64,000 nucleotides of DNA from Paragordius varius (Eukaryota > Animalia > Nematomorpha). Shown in pieces: positions 41,426 through 59,119 of this stretch (positions are counted from its first letter, which is position 1; every line of letters starts with the position of its first letter). Where the stretch lies: NCBI GenBank assembly GCA_964247055.1, contig OZ176054.1, positions 4,402,001-4,466,000 of the forward strand, given 5' to 3'. The notes beneath the pieces are model-generated. The model made no database searches. It was given only the letters and a program-made list of their open reading frames with translations, and was not told where the DNA came from. The translations under genes were made by a program, and so were the position numbers.

Positions 41426-44400
41426 ATGGAAAGTACGGATAAAACCATTTTTTGGCTGGAGCAGGCTAAATACTCTCCTGAAGAAAATGATATTAACACT
41501 GCTTTGGAGAATGTTTTTTTCTATATAAATATAGGCTATTAATAACATAATAAAAGAGCAAACTTATGATACGCATTTATCTGTTTAATTTTATTTTATT
41601 TTTAGAGCATACTTTCTATTAACAATAAGAGCATTAATACCCAATTACTAATTTTAAGATGTGTTGAATTAGCCTGGTTTTAATTATTACATAATTTTAG
41701 CAAACATAATTTTCTTAACATATTAAAGGTTATGGATTTTGTGAACTCCTGCTTGAAAGATTTTCATATTTTAATACTAAAAAGGTTGATTGAGATCATA
41801 ACAGTTTTTTACAAAACTTTTTTTCAAGTATTATATAATACAGTATTAAAGTTTATGGCTTTTTCATCCAGTGATTTTGATGCAAATCAAATTTGGAATT
41901 TCTTAAAAAATTGCAAATCGCAAGTGTTGAGTTTGCACGAAACTGAAAATATTGGTTTATCTACACAGACCATCAAATTTATTGAAATACTTATAATAAT
42001 TCAAAGCTGGTCATCCGCAGTTAAATCTTTTCTATTATTTAAAGGATTCATTTCAAACTAATGTACTTGAATATTCTCTGGATAATATTTCAGAAAATTA
42101 TAAATTTATGCGGTGTTTACAGTTGGAAGAAGAAAGCAAACATTTATTTCAAATGCTTATTAACCATTTAATTAGCATTAATGTTTCCCATTCAAATTTA
42201 ATTACACTGATAGGAAGCCTGACCAATATATCCCTACAGCGTCCCCATTACTTGTCCAAAGTTGTTGCGTCATTTTTATCATTATACAGTATATATGTCA
42301 TCATATTTTATATATAGATAATTTACCACCCACATTATCACGTTCACAAATATATTCGATTAAGAAAAGTCTTAAAAATCGGTTATTAAGTCATTTAAGG
42401 CATCCATCATCGTACGAATTTCACGATGTTATTATGCCAATTTTGTATGAAATGGGTTTATCCCAATACGAAATCAATAGATATGTGCCAAAAAATCGGG
42501 CCAAGCATGTTAAAGCAACTGAACTATACTCCTCGGAGGTTTTCTTCAATAATTTCAAATTAAATATAAATCTTTTAATTGTTTATTATAACTACTATTA
42601 AAATTTGCCATTAATTTATGATTTTTTATTTCCTATTATTTGCTATTAGCAATCGGAAACAGTGAAAACCAATATAAAATTAATGACCAATCTATTATCT
42701 CCCCCGGCTACGGTTGAATTAGTTTTGTACAACATGGTAAATTTACAATAATATTTGTGTAGGAAAAACTGCCAGAAAAAATTCCAAAAGATTTTGTTTC
42801 CATCTATAAACCAGTTCAAAATGCTGGATCAGAACAACAAATTCAATTTTTAGCTAAACTTTTGGTCAAAAAAACAAATTTTGACGCTTATAAGGTGCAG
42901 TAAATATTAGAATTATAAAGATAAAAGAAAGATATAAAATAACTATCTGTAAGATCCTTTTTATTTTTTTATATAACCTAAATTATTATAAAAAATTGTA
43001 GATAATAGACTATATTACCACATCTGTTCCTTATTTTGCTAACTGAAATAGGTTATAGTTTGGATGTCTTTTTCTAAAAAATATTTGTCTTTTTTCATTT
43101 TTATAATTTCAATTTAAAGCAAAACTTAAATACGGACAAAACGTAATAACTAAAAGACAATAAATTTTTTAAATTTAACTATGGTTTTGGGGTTACAATG
43201 GGATTATAGATATAAATTGGTAATACATAATTATATAATTTAAATAATAATTATATATTTTATGTAGTGGTTTTAAAAGTGTGGTTGTTTTTTTTTAAAA
43301 AATATTCTCATTACCTTTTGTAGGTGTATTTATATTTTTTTACTGTATATATCATTTTCATAATATAATAATGATTGAAATATTACTTGGTTATTAGCTT
43401 TGGTAATAATTATTATTCCACCGATTATTAGTGGTAAAATTATTTTGTCTATTTATAAATTATTTTTGTATATATGCATAGAATAATCAAAAACTTCATC
43501 CCAATACCGTACCTATAAAAAATGATTTTTCTGATACCAACAAATCTTTGGCCTCCAAAGCAAGCCTTTTCAAGTTTGATGCGAAATCATTTGATTTACT
43601 GGCTCGTTCGAGCCATATAAAAACTGTTTTAAAAGGAAAAGTCAAACATTCCTATCCAGATTTGTTTGAAAATTTTGATTCAAAATCATTGTTTAACATC
43701 TTATTCCTAAGGATCCTGGAGTGCCCTTGTAAATCAAACGTTGAAATTTTACTGAAAAATACATGGATAATTGATTTAATCGTTACGAAAGATTTATGGT
43801 CGACCACTGATATTACATCGCTAAATTTGGTGAACAGTATTAAATATTTCATTTAATATAAAACAACATAGTATTTATGGAGTATTTGGAAAACGATTTC
43901 AAAGACAATTTTGAATTGTTTATATTTTACATGAAATACATGTACAAGCAATCCATCCTCAATAACAAGGGTTTCGAAGTTTATGATAAATTGTTGGAAC
44001 GTATTTTTACGACAGTCATGGAGAAATACGGTTGTGATGAAGAGTTAATTTTTATGATTTATGTATTGGTAGATTAATTTACAAAATTTTGACACAAATA
44101 CCTCAGATATCCAATAAAATTTTTGATATATTAACTGAATTCTTAACTGATGAAAATGAAGAAATTCATCAGATTATATTGAAAGTAGCCAACGTTCGCC
44201 CTATGTTAAGACGAAAATTAATGGAAAACTTTATTTTACCCAAATTATATAATGAGAATGAAGAATGTAGACGATATATAAACTCGTTGGTTTTAACCTG
44301 CTACGCTGATAAAAAGTATCAAGAATTAATAGAGGTTTTTTGATTTTTTTGTTAACCTACTAGACCTATATTTTCAACAAAATCGCAGAGCTCAATGATG

Positions 44401-46587
44401 ATACATTAGATGACGTATCTGATGATACGATTGAGTTATATTTCAATTCTTACTTTATTTTACTGCCCAAGAATCCAAAATTAATCACAAAACTTTTTAG
44501 CCTTTATGATGAATGCAATGCCAGGGCCAAAAAAGTGTTATTACGTGTTGTTGATACTCCGGTATAATATAATTTGAATATAAAGGTAAAAATTTTGAAT
44601 GGTATTGAATCTCAAGATTTAGTTGATGCACTAAAAGATGAAAGTTGTCAAGCGGGGAAAGATCCACTCATCACACGTCTAATACAAATTATGGCCACAC
44701 TTTATACTGCAGGGACTGTTCACAACACTGGTATTATACTAAACTAATTTTTCATGGCCAGATGCGTATAAAAATAATTTTATTATTTCTATTTTTACGC
44801 ATCGCGCTATAAAAATATTTTCTTAATATTTTAAACAATGTACGTAACACGCTATAAAATATTTCTTATTCATTGGATTCATATATATATATAATGTTAT
44901 TGTAGGACATTTGACACCGTTGAATATGTTAAAAAAACCGTTATCACCCAAACTTGTTAGCTTAGTCAAATACTTGTATTTTGAAACAAAGAGTGTTACC
45001 GACGTTAAAATAACGTTACCAGTTATAAATGGGTTATCTCACGAGGACATCATATCACTCCTCCCTAAATTTATATCCATTAACAATATCAATTTGGTAA
45101 AGGATATACTATTTAAGTGTTGTTCTGTTAGTAATTTATATCCAAATTTGCTGTCACCTACGGAACTTTTTGTAGCCCTTCACGAAATCCAGGTTTCAGC
45201 TTCAAACGAAAAAGGTATGTGTGAAAAAATTTTAATGTATCACATAAAACGGTTTTTTCCATATTTTTTATTGTTATTTGAAGATAAGCAATTATTTAAT
45301 ATTTTAAGCATATTTATTTTGAGTGAAAATACAAAGACTCTCTGTGCAAAACATTACTAGTTTTTCAGAAACTAGGCTTATAAATGTCATTATTGTTAAT
45401 TAAAATATTAGAATATTTTAATTTTTTGTTTACGCAATCTTAACAATGTAATATATTAATTAAAATTTTGGTTTACCGTCAAGCTCTTTTTATTTATAAA
45501 TAATTAACCTTTAGTTTTTGATAATTTTTTGTTAAAATATATAGAATATTAACGTTTTTTATGCAATTTCAAAAAAATTCATTTTAATCAGATAATTCAA
45601 ATATGTGTGACACAAAAAACGTTATTAAAGCAATCAATATATGTTTTGGAAACAAGCGATTATTTAATTCTGATGTTTTGATGCATTCATTGGATTCAAT
45701 GATTAACATTAAACCATTACCCTTATTATTTATGCGAACTGTGATACAATGTGTTGTTCAATATCCACATTTAGTCAACTATGCCATCGATATTTTATTT
45801 AAATTAATACAATTACAGGTAACCAATATTTTTTGTCACGATAAATTTGGACTCTTTTACATAATTTAGGTAAATATATATGTAAATCATGGTTCTAGAA
45901 ATACAGGTTTAAGCAAAAAATGACTAAGAGAGTTTAAATGACCAAATTTGATGTGGTTTATTACTATATATTCAGGTTTACCAAGTGTATTTCCAATCTA
46001 TATTTTTTGTTTTTAATTATACAATAGAGTTTATTCCTCATTTAAAATGTCATTGGGCCTATTTCTAATAATACCAGCAACAATATCGATATTTAATATA
46101 AAATTATAAATTTTAACATTTAATTATGTTTTAATGCGAAAAAATATTATTATTTTATTGTTATTTACATGTTTTTTGAACAACCATTTATTTAAGAGTT
46201 TTTATTTTAAAAAATTTATAGTGGTATGCAATTTTCTCATTTATTAATTTATTTTGCTATAACATTCTATTTTTGGTAATAAAACGACATATAAATTGTT
46301 CATTAATCATTATTTATCATTTATTTACATTTAAAGGTATGGAATCAAAAACAGGCATGGATAGGTTTTGTTAAATGTTGTGAAAAAATTTTACCACGAT
46401 CAATATGTGTCTTATTGTCATTGCATGAAAAACAATTTATAAATGTGTTAGAAATGGCCCCACAGTTAAGAGAACCATTGAAAGAATATTATAATAATTT
46501 GTCGAGAGAAAAGGTTTGTTTTTTCCTATACATATTTTTTAGCAAAAACAAATTCCCATATACATTGTTGATGAAATAAATAACTAA
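41426..46587 (+). CDS. SYMPK: Symplekin (scaffold of the cleavage/polyadenylation complex)
   Basis: N-terminal HEAT region ([32 protein letters not shown]), [73 protein letters not shown]. Stop TAA at 46585-46587. Confidence 0.9.
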
Positions 46588-47687
46588 CCCTTTATGATTT
46601 GTATTACATCTTCATCATTAAGTATATGTTCTTTTCCAACTCTTTGTGGGTTGTGTTTAACCGAGCTACCCCAAACTTGGGCATATTTAAATTGAGCAAG
46701 TATAGTTTTGTGGATACTATTACAAAAATCTTCCACTGTGCGCGATTTTTGTTTTAAAATGACAGGACTGTTATAATCAGGTATTTGCCCTTTTGGTTTA
46801 GTATATATCCGTAAAAGCTTCATATATTCCCACATAGTTTCTAAAAGTTCATCAAAATTCCACTTTAGATGAGCAGATATTGGAACACAATGGGGGAGTT
46901 GTGATAGAATGTTTAATTCTTCCAAGGAAATGTCATCTATTTTGTTTAGCACATAAATACAGGGTATATAAACTCTATTACCCTCTATAACATCGATAAA
47001 TTCGTCAGTAGTTACATCAGTACGAAAGGTAATATCGGCATTGTGTATCTTATATTCACCCAATATATTTTTTACCTGGTCATAATCGAGTTCTGATTGC
47101 GGTACTAATGCATTGAAATTAATACCACCACCAATTTTATCTTTGCGTTTAAAGCTAATGGGAGGAGGACTTTTATTTAATCGTATGCCGAAACCATCCA
47201 GTTCTTTTTCCAACAATAATTTGTGTTTGAGCGGTTTTGTAACATCGAGTATCATTAAAATTAAATCACACGTTCTTGCTACAGCTATGACTTGTTTACC
47301 TCTGCCTTTTCCATCTTTCGCGCCTTCAATTATGCCAGGAAGATCAAGCAGTTGAATTCTGGCACCCTTATACTTTACGACACCTGGTACGGTAGTGAGT
47401 GTTGTAAACTCATAAGCTGCAACTTCGGAATAAACGCCAGCCAAGTTAGAGAGAAGCGTACTTTTACCAACCGATGGAAAACCCACAAAACCGACACGAG
47501 AATCTCCAGTTTTAGCGACATCAAATCCTTCGCCAGTGCCACCACCGCCTGATTTAGGCGTAATAAGTTCTCTTCGTAGTTTTGCTAATCTAGCTTTCAG
47601 AATTCCCAGATGACCCATTGTAGCTTTATTTCTTTGCGTACGAGCCATCTCATTTTCAATTTCACTAATTTTTTCCAACACGCCCAT
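46584..47687 (-). CDS. DRG1: Developmentally regulated GTP-binding protein 1 (intronless, 367 aa)
   Basis: [60 protein letters not shown]-terminal TGS domain. Confidence 0.98.
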
Positions 47688-51359: not shown

Positions 51360-54300
51360 GCTATGAGCTCAGCTTCACCTCGTGTAAAAATCACTTTTTT
51401 GAAAAAACGGGAGTTCCCAAAATTTTAAGTTTGAACGATGTGTACAGAAAACGTGTGGACCCACTAGTTTCAATAGTGTTAAAATTTACGCACCGAGGGT
51501 CACTTTGCCCTTTTTTGAAAACTCCCTTAGTTTAGCAATACACTATTAAAAATTGGGATTTTGGAATTGTTGGCTTTTTAACACAATGCTGAAAAATGTG
51601 TGGGCACAGTCAGTTTAAAGCTTTTTTAAATCGTTTTACAGTTGCAAGTGACTAAGCGCTTTTTTTATATTAGGCCCACATTTTGAGCCCATTTAAGGTA
51701 AAAATAGGGGATTTAAGATAATATAGACCAGTATTCAAACCGCGGCCCGCGGGCCGCATGCGGCCCTAAGAGTGCTTCAAAATTGCCCTATGACCATATT
51801 AATACTTATATTATTTTTTTAACACATAAACGAATTTTCGATTATTTTTATACTAATTTATTTTCTTTAGATTTAATTTTGGTAGTTTTTTTTACCCAAT
51901 TCGAAATGTAAAAAATTTCCCCACTAAAATAATTTCAAAAATTTGGCACACGTTGTTTCTGTTTCTGTTTCTGTATTCTATTTTCTTTTCTATTTTGAAA
52001 TTTTTACTGCATTCCTTTTTGTATTTAAGCAAGCCTTTCACCCAAACTTGCATATACATATTCTTTTCACAGCTATCCTGCCTCATTTTTTATAACTCAT
52101 TCCCATAAAATATTTTTCCAATAAACATCATTAATTTTCAACGTTTTTTTATAGCGTAATTTAAATTATATACGTATTTTTTGAAAAAATTTACATAATA
52201 ATTAAACATAAATTCAAAGGATGACATCTAATGCTAAAAAACGTAAATTATCCGATGAAAATCGCCTTTTAAAAAAGAATGGGAAGAAAAATTCTTTGTC
52301 GTTTAAAATAAAAATGTTGTTACCTGCCTTATATGTAAGGACAACATAATTAAAAATACAATATTGAAAGAATTTTACAATCCATGTTTTTCATAAATTA
52401 CCAGAAAATCATGAGGAAAAACGAAAAATATAAAAAGATTAAGGAATTATACCAGAAAGGAAAATCTATTATGTCCATAGCTTTCTCCCAGGAAAAAGTT
52501 GTATAATTCGTATGAAATTTGTTATATTTTAGGAAAAAATTTGAAATCGGTTACTGATTCCCAACTAAAAGAATGTCTAATAAATGGTTGCACTTTTTTA
52601 TTTCATAAATTCCATGTAAAGATCAAATCATGAGGCAAAACTTTATGCAACATGTGCACGACGCATTAAAGATATGTCTTAATATATTTTTAACAATACA
52701 TTATTGGCTCTGAAAAACTGCAAATATTTTAGTAAAGCTATTGATTCTAGCACTGATATTCGTACAACACCTCAATGTGCGCTCTTCGTAAGATTTTGCA
52801 ACGACAACATAATCACGATAAATATTTAAAATTTTTACCAATGAATAATACCACGAAAGGAAGTGATTTTCTCGAAATAATTAACACTTTTTTCGATAAT
52901 AATGGTATATCTATAAAAAATTGGTTTCGATCTGCACAGATGGCTGTCCCTCTATGATTGGAATAACCAAAGGATTTACTCCTCTTTTGAAAAAACGATT
53001 ATAATTTACAAAATATTTTATCCTTTTACTGCTTTATTCATCAGCAAAACTCGGTTTCGCGTGTAAAAGATGAATCACTCAATTCAGTAATTAAAACGGT
53101 TGTTTAAATAGTCAACCACATCCGTGGCAGAGAATTCAACCGCCGTAAATTCAAAAACCTTCTGAAGGATATCCACAGTGAGTTTGATTATATGCTTTTG
53201 TACACCGCTGTGAGATGGCTAAGCCTTAGCAAAGTATTAATAGATTTTTTGTATTAAGACATGAAACTCTATTATTTATAAAAGATAACAGAAAGTTTGA
53301 CGAGGAAATTAATAGTGACATATGGTGGGTTTTATTAGTCTACCTTTGCGACATTACTTATAAACTTTTTTAATACGTCGTCAAGGAAGCAAAATAATAA
53401 CTTAATTTGCTAATCTTTTAAAAGTTAATAATATAAACTAGATTTTATAAGTTAAACACTCCTATATTTTCCAACACTTAAAACGATTCATGAAGAATAT
53501 ATGGAATTTAGCAGATTAATTTAATAATAGATGATTTGACATTTTTATCTAATGATATATAATTCCAATTTCAAAAATTAAGATATATTAAAAATTGCTT
53601 AAAATTCGTTGAAAATCCATGGCATATGAATATATTCAATATTAAACAACTTGAGCATTTCGGTTTTGATAAGGCGCATATCATTGAAACTTCGTAGGTT
53701 TTGAAAATTCCGATTTGGGTATTAAAAGAGAATCGCAGAGAAGAAAGATATGTAGAGTTTTGGCAAAATGTGCCAAATAAATATGAAAATATAAAAAAAT
53801 GTGCTCAAGTTATCCTAACTCTTTTTCCCTCAACTTATATGTGTGAGACGTCATATTCAAAAATAAAATATGTCAAGAATACATACAGAAACCGCTTAAC
53901 CGATGTTCATATGGAGGACGTATTAAGATTGGCCTGTCATGAGGTGAAGCCAAATTTGTCAAAAAATATTGGTTAATTTCGAAATTAAAATTGTTATCGA
54001 ATTATTTTAATTTTTTAAACTAAATGGTAAACCAGTTTTTAGCTGGATTTACATGCGATCCGCAAAAATTTCATTGTGCTGATTTAGAGTATAAATATGT
54101 GCATATGTGTAAAATAGCTATGGAATATTTGCCATTATAAGGTTCATGGCCCTCAAAAAAAATATATTTTATTTGGCCCGTCAATTTTTTTTTTGGTGAG
54201 TACCACTGATATAGACATTGAAGCCATTTTTTGGAAAGCTTTTAGGCCCAGGCAAATTAAAAATCGACTTTTTAAATTGTTTTGCAATTGCGCCGAGGGT

Positions 54301-56590: not shown

Positions 56591-57338
56591 TCAAGCTTCA
56601 ACTATTTCATAAAGAAGATGTAAAGCATTTCCTACCGCTAAATTTTTATTTTGTATGTCCCCAAGGGTATCGGAATTCTGTAATTTAATAAATTGTCCAT
56701 TTTTCTCCAAATATATATTATATTCACATTTGTCTGTGTTACTTAATAAATCTCTCATATTTAGATATTTTTTTAAATGTTCAACTATAAATTAATATAA
56801 TTAATACTGGATGCGTTCGAGGTAGTTTTCAAATATTTTGTTGAATCCTTAGACGATTGTTGATTATACGGCTTAAAAATAATTTCAATAGGTTTAACTA
56901 AATTATATATGAAATATAACTTTCTTCAAAAGCGGAACAATTTTTTATCGTATCCATACTTATTTTTTTCCATTTTTGGTGAATCCGTTGCTCATATTCT
57001 TCCCTATATGGATAAATTTTTTTAATTAGTGTATCAAAGGTAGGATCTGGTCGTAACGAACGTTTTGAAATTAATTTTTTACGGCATGTTGGGCATTCTT
57101 TGTTTCCGCTCCTCAATGCTGTGATTATACATTCATGACAAAAGCGATGTAAACATTCTTTCGTTGTCATAGTTTGTTTCAACATATCGAGACAAATAGG
57201 ACATATTAACTCATTATGCAAACTTTGCATAGATATGGCAATTTTGGTGTCATCCTCTATCAACTTCTGTGGTTCACGATTTAATTCGTATAAATTCAAC
57301 TCCCAAACCTTATTTGAAAATATTGTATCAGCAGACAT
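56591..57338 (-). CDS. RNF2: Polycomb PRC1 E3 ligase RING1/RNF2 (Sce), 233 aa
   Basis: Exons 57338-56921, 56897-56808, 56784-56591 (702 nt). [10 protein letters not shown]3HC4 [58 protein letters not shown] domain IEIIFKP...[17 protein letters not shown]. Confidence 0.95.
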
Positions 57339-57350: not shown

Positions 57351-59119
57351 ATGGATACAGCTGACTGGATCCCAAGTGGAACTAATAAATACTACAGGTA
57401 AAAGGGGTTATGTAGAAAATAGGAAATTCGAATTAGGATTAATGAAATGGAAGGACATTCCAAGTTTTTCTCATTATTACATTGCGTGCTCATTATATGG
57501 CGGTCCTCTTGCATTTCTTTTGAAAGACAATGGTGAAAAACAAAAGTGCATGATTATGATTTTATCCGCATTCGGTAGCAAATTGGGCATGATCAAGTTT
57601 TAACTTTATAAAATTTAGTATTTTAGATACTCGTATAGTTCTTATAAGTTGGACTATAGCTTATCCTGATAATTTATTGCTTCTTCAAGATGATGGGACT
57701 ATTTTAATTTATAACCAATTTGGAAATTTTATTAAAAATGATAAGCTAAGCATTCAAGAAAATTGGACCATATTGGATTCACACATATTTTTAAGAGAAG
57801 AAAAGGAGAAAAATACTGGCTTAGCCGTGCTTTCTAGGCTCTTACATCAAAACGTACCACAATATAAACTATTTTACATTGAAAATGTTATGAATAAAAA
57901 TTGTAAAATTGCGGAATTTAAAACAAATTTTGAGTCTTTTAAATGTGTCAATACACATTTTAATACCCAACACATTCAATCTTTTCAGGCATATCGCCCT
58001 TTATGGCATTTGATATATCAATATAATAGAATATATTTGATATCCATCAATTTGAAAAATAATAAATTTTTCATTACCGATAAAAATAATTATGAACTAA
58101 CACTCAACCTTGATTTAAAAGGTAATCAAATACAATTTTCCATTCACTCTAATAACCGACACATTGCCATATATGACAAATATTCCATCCATATTGTAAA
58201 TATTTTATGGGATGCTGATATTTCTAACCTAAATTGCCGCTTACTTTACAGTTTTTGTATTGAATCCGATCCTTTCATTAAAATAAGTTTTGTGTTATTT
58301 GTTCAATTTTTTTATTATAGAAAATGAATATGGAAACGTTTATTGGTGTGGGTCAGATACATTGCTATGCATAGGGAGTGTTAATTATGTTTTGTACTCT
58401 CTTGATGAAGGGTCCACGCAAGTCAATAAACTCTTTTTCACTCTAAACAACACTGAAGATGCAGGCAGCAAAGAAAATGACATCATTGTCATACCAGAAA
58501 TCGATGGTTGTAGATTAATTACAAAATGTACGACATTGTTTGTGCAAAAAGTTCCAACTCTCACAACCAATATATTTAAGATTAGTAGTACATCGTACAC
58601 TTCGTTCCTTTACAACAATTTTTGTGGCGAATCTTCCTCCAAATTTATGACACAAATGTTTAACTTGCACCGATTTCGCACCGAAGATCGAAAAAACTTA
58701 AAACACGCCATTATGGAATGTATTAATGGAGCGTTTGAAGAATACTGTGTATTAAGACAGAAAAAGCTCCTTACAGCAGCATCTTGTGGTCTTAAGTTAT
58801 TGGCATTTACGGAAAAAAGCACAAAAAACATGGTTGGATATTTTTATCGCGCCCTAGGAATTCTAAAATTATTGAATAATCTTAGGTGTTTTGCCGACAT
58901 ACCGCTAACTTACACACAATTTATCATGCTATGTTACTCTGATACAGAAACCAATATATATTCTCTAAAAGACATAGATTCTAGCATCAAAATTGTCATT
59001 AATAAATTAACCGATAAAAAATTTTATGCACTTGCTTTGGAGATTACCAAAAATCTACTGAATGATTCACGTTCCAAGGATCAAATTTTGTGTAAATGGG
59101 CTTGTTCTATGGTAATTTT

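Follow-up and report, generated by a model that had tools for sequence, protein, structure and literature searches.

Four-base overlaps between the stop codons of convergent genes are familiar in prokaryotes, where CTA (TAG on the opposite strand) interlocks with TAA at almost no coding cost. Williams et al. reportedly described, in 2005, overlapping transcription of neighbouring genes in the compacted genomes of microsporidia and nucleomorphs. In those genomes, intergenic loss forces transcripts, and sometimes coding regions, to overlap, and termination signals lie inside neighbours. Overlapping transcription in compacted eukaryotic genomes is the topic of PMC3629993; in yeast, convergent genes at short spacers form mRNA duplexes (PMC6993858), and in Arabidopsis convergent pairs share a polyadenylation region (PMC3032780). 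Here we describe a 64,000-nucleotide (nt) stretch of the genome of the hairworm Paragordius varius (assembly GCA_964247055.1, contig OZ176054.1, positions 4,402,001 to 4,466,000; hereafter the window), in which the coding sequences of symplekin and DRG1 (developmentally regulated GTP-binding protein 1) very probably share the four bases CTAA on opposite strands. Overlapping convergent 3' ends are already well documented; this locus is an animal case with a documented sister state.

The geometry is the same as in prokaryotes, but the setting is a eukaryotic nuclear genome, where transcripts end by cleavage and polyadenylation rather than at terminators and where the terminal exon is predicted to be spliced. 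Microsporidian and nucleomorph genomes are smaller than 3 Mb and uniformly compact, whereas the hairworm genome measures at least 110 Mb and contains transposon remnants and, within symplekin, introns of up to 518 nt, so that compaction here is local. With the yeast and Arabidopsis pairs the locus shares a very short separation, a conserved convergent orientation and, by prediction, complementary mRNA 3' ends. Overlap in those pairs is normally between untranslated regions (UTRs), or between a UTR and coding sequence; in this locus, by prediction from the DNA, it is the two stop codons that interlock.

Two genes and four shared bases

Re-reading positions 46570-46595 of the + strand placed TAA at 46585-46587, an AATAAA at 46575-46580, and CTA at 46584-46586, which is TAG on the - strand. 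The features at the junction are as follows.

41426-46587, + strand: symplekin (SYMPK/Pta1) coding region, many exons, from Pfam domains and spliced alignment to Gordionus; predicted start ATG at 41426
46337-46513, + strand: penultimate symplekin coding exon, 59 amino acids (aa) ending in SREK, end of the Symplekin_C domain
46514-46542, + strand: predicted last symplekin intron, 29 nt, GT..AG, phase 0 after SREK, from sequence, tail profile and Gordionus position
46543-46587, + strand: predicted terminal symplekin exon, 14 codons plus TAA (46585-46587), from its translation and fit to the post-domain motif
46584-46587, both strands: CTAA, bases common to both coding sequences, read directly from the sequence
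46584-47687, - strand: DRG1, intronless, 367 aa plus TAG, from its ATG-to-TAG open reading frame, domains and homologues

Each of the four shared bases can be assigned. C46584 serves symplekin as the wobble base of its last Asn codon and DRG1 as the third base of its TAG (46586-46584), while A46587 closes the symplekin TAA and occupies the wobble position in the last Gly codon of DRG1. Were the last Asn codon AAT rather than AAC, the DRG1 stop would merely switch from TAG to TAA. The overlap thus consists of two stop codons and two wobble positions and nothing else, and therefore places almost no constraint on either protein. The G+C content of the window is 24-32% throughout.

The two genes share coding bases on opposite strands if, as on our reading, intron 46514-46542 is spliced out; judged jointly, the last intron and the overlap are very likely real. 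The first-pass annotation of this DNA had proposed that the two stops overlap, that an AATAAA lies within symplekin's last codons, and that a 3' UTR of either gene would necessarily lie opposite coding sequence of the other. With the terminal exon spliced, the first of these stands as read; the hexamer is where it was said to be, and the antisense arrangement follows from the interlocked stops.

The identities that it had assigned to the two genes were also borne out. Symplekin exons were searched one by one. Two of them matched SYMPK_PTA1_N (PF11935), the N-terminal HEAT-repeat domain, with 43.2 and 35.4 bits (cut-off 25), and exons in the window matched positions 1-70 and 71-142 of Symplekin_C (PF12295), of which a genome search recovered positions 72-180. 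No other Symplekin_C locus was found in the genome, indicating a single copy. The best library hit of one 88-aa exon was a symplekin-like isoform X1 of Gordionus (XP_065319683; P0121 in our library), the closest relative in the database.

DRG1 carries a GTPase domain (MMR_HSR1, PF01926), its C-terminal extension (MMR_HSR1_Xtn, PF16897) and a TGS domain (PF02824), each above its cut-off, in a protein of the length typical for the family (about 365 aa). Along its full length it shares 85% identity with the orthologue in Gordionus sp. m RMFG-2023; for the DRG1 of many other animals the figure is 74-79%. The TGS match extends to residue 366 of 367, and the protein ends 2 residues past its DEDVIQII motif. 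Of 120 listed homologues, 97 extend 3 residues beyond the DEDV-Q-I motif and 19 extend 2, as the window protein does; the stop is therefore normally placed, on the short side of the range.

DRG1 is single copy in the 110.6-Mb assembly, where only two other matches were found:

C5:9146282-9150773: DRG paralogue with several exons, probably DRG2, on the contig of the window at a distance of about 4.7 Mb
C3:10657757-10658131: weak DRG1 match from the assembly search

Exact-product look-ups for the window DRG1 and for the Gordionus proteins P0001 and P0121 returned no match and brought up no transcript of the window's species. Two Logan contigs (L006 and L007) with the next-best DRG1 proteins were rejected as uninformative on this locus, as the DRG1 that they encode is only 78-79% identical to that of the window and comes from other species.

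The last symplekin intron

Symplekin introns were placed by scripted protein-to-genome spliced alignment against P0121, which spanned its residues 49-1078 with a score of 1319. In well-conserved parts of the protein, this alignment supported at least seven introns of 24-29 nt, all on the + strand:

41677-41700, + strand: 24-nt intron
42020-42044, + strand: 25-nt intron
42289-42317, + strand: 29-nt intron
42737-42762, + strand: 26-nt intron
44044-44072, + strand: 29-nt intron
44335-44363, + strand: 29-nt intron
44562-44585, + strand: 24-nt intron

Splicing at several of these junctions recovers residues shared with Gordionus, such as ACK over 41677-41700 and LYN.LPPTL over 42289-42317. Introns shorter than 30 nt are therefore normal in this gene. 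Longer introns were also placed, up to one of 518 nt (45819-46336). Other candidates, for example 42900-42931 and 44928-44960, fall in poorly conserved parts of symplekin; they are doubtful and were not relied on. Two further introns, of 22 nt (41513-41534) and 23 nt (41583-41605), probably lie near the start of the gene, and several of the micro-introns open with GTTT or GTTA instead of GTAAG or GTATG.

The exon that precedes the last intron is well anchored: 46337-46513 aligns to residues 999-1050 of a human symplekin chain (E 6e-8) and is 47% identical to residues 1019-1078 of P0121. What follows SREK depends on splicing. In 65 symplekins of our library, a conserved motif stands exactly after this boundary, approximately R-A-H-I-P-x-S-I-M-D-V-L in animals, with a related form, S-L-P-R-S-x-L-V-V-L-G-L, in other symplekins. 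We built a register-fixed profile from these 65 tails and used as background the 47,602 14-mers of the window's six-frame translation. The terminal exon carries the post-domain motif by this measure: the spliced 14-aa tail scored +7.3 bits, a value matched by 66 of the 47,602 14-mers (top 0.14%, p about 0.0014), whereas the retained reading scored -13.1 bits. A 29-nt last intron had been proposed in the first-pass annotation, with retention named as the alternative that would undo the overlap; the tail profile, the position of the intron in Gordionus and the sibling micro-introns all favour splicing.

The comparison with Gordionus supplied a second line. The locus (L004, OX940785.2) was reached through the longest Gordionus isoform (P0273). 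Its symplekin gene is interrupted by a 43-nt GT..AG intron at the corresponding codon boundary, so that SPEK is joined to KTDKVKEIINDIL (SPEK/KTDKV). The annotated Gordionus proteins require this splice, and the Gordionus annotation used RNA-seq evidence (10.1101/2023.06.26.546503). Intron 46514-46542 is favoured because these two independent lines, the tail motif and the conserved intron position, both point to it.

An alternative is that 46514-46542 is left unspliced, or is spliced only sometimes. Symplekin would then continue through 21 unrelated codons to a TAA at 46577-46579, the two stops would lie 4 nt apart, and there would be no coding overlap. That the retained frame stays open for these 21 codons speaks for this possibility, as does the abundance of GT..AG pairs of 18-40 nt in AT-rich sequence (194 in 5.2 kb). 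Several points of our own analysis also count against splicing. The intron has no TAAT element. In a local hidden Markov model (HMM) search of the window's six-frame translation, made with a tail motif of 15 positions, the terminal exon scored -0.6 bits, with chance peptides scoring higher, and thus gave no signal. The register-fixed profile that replaced this search asks a narrower question and is the sole test that separates the two readings; it supports splicing without settling the matter. The last splice, like all 3'-end positions given below, is predicted from sequence. Set against these points are the scores on the tail profile, -13.1 bits for the retained and +7.3 bits for the spliced peptide, the identical intron position in the annotated Gordionus orthologue, and at least seven comparable introns in symplekin itself. 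We consider retention unlikely, and even retention would leave every 3' UTR antisense to the partner's coding sequence.

A spacer in Gordionus

In Gordionus sp. m RMFG-2023 (G. montsenyensis; OX940785.2, XP_065319683-87), DRG1 and symplekin are likewise adjacent and tail to tail, their accessions are consecutive in both annotation sets, and the DRG1 coding sequence is also one exon. The last symplekin intron has 43 nt there and 29 nt here, the symplekin tail 42 aa there and 14 aa here, and the Gordionus stops (TGA for DRG1, TAA for symplekin) lie 105 nt apart, leaving the coding sequences without overlap. Within the Gordionus spacer (L004:21800-21904), one AATAAA follows the DRG1 stop by 23 nt and another follows the symplekin stop by 22 nt. 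This implies that the spacer may be two minimal 3' UTRs back to back, of about 40-50 nt each, with predicted ends that nearly meet.

When the DNA of the two loci was aligned, the symplekin domain exon and the end of DRG1 matched well on either side of the junction. From the shared donor site to the DRG1 stop, the distance is about 73 nt here and about 280 nt in Gordionus, a difference of some 210 nt. Absent here are the spacer, 28 codons of the symplekin tail, 14 nt of the intron and one DRG1 codon. Loss in this lineage appears likelier than gain in Gordionus because most other symplekins, among library homologues, carry longer tails, mostly of 30-80 residues. Weighing against confidence in this direction, the comparison covers two hairworm loci, and the longer tails elsewhere are its sole indication.

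A shorter junction could also arise from an assembly collapse or deletion error, or from decay of one partner into a pseudogene. The genome is AT-rich and repeat-rich, and it is the Paragordius region that is the shorter one by about 210 nt. Yet both reading frames are intact up to their conserved C-termini, both genes are sole copies in the assembly, and the missing segment ends exactly at usable stops on both strands. An artefact of this kind is therefore highly improbable.

Candidate 3'-end signals and local compaction

The candidate signals for the 3' ends of the two mRNAs are the following.

46575-46580, + strand: AATAAA in symplekin's last codons, candidate polyadenylation signal from sequence, its use predicted
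46591-46605, + strand: T/GT-rich stretch, putative downstream element, antisense to DRG1's last codons
46436-46441, - strand: TATAAA variant, putative DRG1 polyadenylation signal, antisense to the penultimate symplekin exon
46320-46325, - strand: nearest canonical AATAAA downstream of DRG1, 259 nt from its stop, in symplekin intron 45819-46336, a further putative signal

On the + strand, the interval between 46279 and 47253 contains no AATAAA or ATTAAA other than the AATAAA at 46575-46580. Those that follow, ATTAAA at 47254 and AATAAA at 47429, are at least 670 nt on, deep in antisense DRG1. The T/GT-rich stretch sits 11-25 nt past the hexamer. If this signal is used, cleavage of symplekin mRNA would be expected about 15-20 nt beyond the AAUAAA contained in the last four codons, near 46592-46605, leaving a 3' UTR of roughly 7-15 nt opposite the end of the DRG1 coding sequence. 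Caution is warranted here, as the position of the embedded AATAAA may be due to chance: the hexamer is frequent in this composition, at about 1 per 335 nt per strand, and it is not enriched in the window (382 observed against 364 expected).

On the DRG1 strand, a weaker AACAAA lies 64 nt after the stop, and the first canonical or close-variant hexamer is the TATAAA at 143 nt. Because such a hexamer is lacking for 143 nt (TATAAA) or 259 nt (AATAAA), DRG1 mRNA would run antisense through the terminal symplekin exon and the micro-intron, and probably through the penultimate exon too. If co-expressed, the two mRNAs would form a natural antisense pair with tens to hundreds of complementary bases.

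Other genes in this genome also lie extremely close together. In the window, the start of a RING-finger gene (CAT at 57336-57338, - strand) and the likely start of VPS16 (ATG at 57351-57353) are head to head and 12 nt apart; the 5' ends of these two genes must overlap or be supplied unusually. A second convergent pair lies on the window's contig, 4.49 Mb off, where two open frames end on a single TTAA (L005:5168-5171; C5:8956167-8956170). One of these frames matches SLD5_C in Pfam with 17 bits, below the cut-off, with the match reaching the end of the profile; the other encodes a tail-anchored SNARE/BET1-like peptide (atlas score 0.90). An AATAAA again lies within coding sequence, about 20 nt before the + strand stop. 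This BET1/GINS4 pair is a probable second 4-nt stop-stop overlap. Telling against it as a parallel, the gene identities are weakly verified: searches of PDB gave no match and those of NCBIfam a noise hit only.

Between DRG1 and the RING-finger gene lies a gene-poor stretch of about 9 kb, in which an open reading frame at 53701-53976 encodes a hAT-family dimerisation domain, a transposase remnant. Compaction is therefore local and not genome-wide.

We consider it probable that the overlap is a by-product of such local compaction, acting on a conserved convergent pair from which the spacer and the end of the symplekin tail are missing here. Symplekin and DRG1 would be conserved neighbours of Nematomorpha, facing each other on opposite strands. 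In this lineage, the spacer and the non-conserved end of the symplekin tail would have been lost, leaving each protein with roughly its minimal conserved C-terminus and the stops interlocked as CTAA. Strong sequence loss on gene-dense islands is the most likely source of the overlap, and the same loss would explain introns of 22-29 nt and start codons 12 nt apart.

The overlap could instead be a selected regulatory device, which, through weak or embedded 3'-end signals, makes symplekin mRNA sensitive to the level of the cleavage and polyadenylation machinery that symplekin scaffolds, or couples symplekin to DRG1 through complementary 3' ends, by RNA duplex, transcriptional interference or small RNAs. 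Convergence has been kept across two hairworm lineages in which DRG1 is 85% and symplekin about 45-50% identical, and the convergent short-spacer genes of yeast that form mRNA duplexes have a preferentially conserved orientation (PMC6993858). Furthermore, if the embedded AATAAA were skipped, the next + strand signal would come at least 670 nt inside antisense DRG1. However, the Gordionus pair has a spacer, ordinary signals and predicted transcript ends that barely meet, so that overlap is not the conserved state; unrelated pairs in this genome abut as tightly; and the shared bases are selectively almost free. We regard selection for regulation as unlikely. More speculative still, and given little credence by us, is the broader idea that genomes of the hairworm lineage tolerate near-zero 3' UTRs and polyadenylation signals inside coding sequence, with an autoregulatory loop for symplekin and cross-talk with DRG1. 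If it were true, read-through at the embedded signal would produce antisense RNA over DRG1 and tie output of the scaffold to the efficiency of the machinery.

The first-pass annotation had drawn attention to symplekin as the scaffold of the 3'-end processing machinery, implying that this role gives the overlap its meaning. That implication loses its force before the Gordionus pair, with its 105-nt spacer and ordinary downstream AATAAA signals, and before the other closely packed gene pairs of this genome; neither protein pays for the overlap, and general compaction suffices to account for it. The function of symplekin is not needed as an explanation because such close packing points to general local compaction, and the tie to 3'-end processing is probably a coincidence under the compaction reading.

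Opposite-strand coding overlap is rare in animals, and symplekin/DRG1 would be a clean case with comparative support, in which the Gordionus state with its 105-nt spacer illustrates how an overlap can arise through sequence loss. For annotation the locus carries a warning: gene finders that do not allow overlapping genes or tiny introns will cut symplekin short here or give it the wrong end. Together with introns of 22-29 nt and a head-to-head spacer of 12 nt, it makes this hairworm genome useful for exploring the limits of splicing and 3'-end signals in animals, and for understanding how convergent transcription is resolved where no spacer is left.

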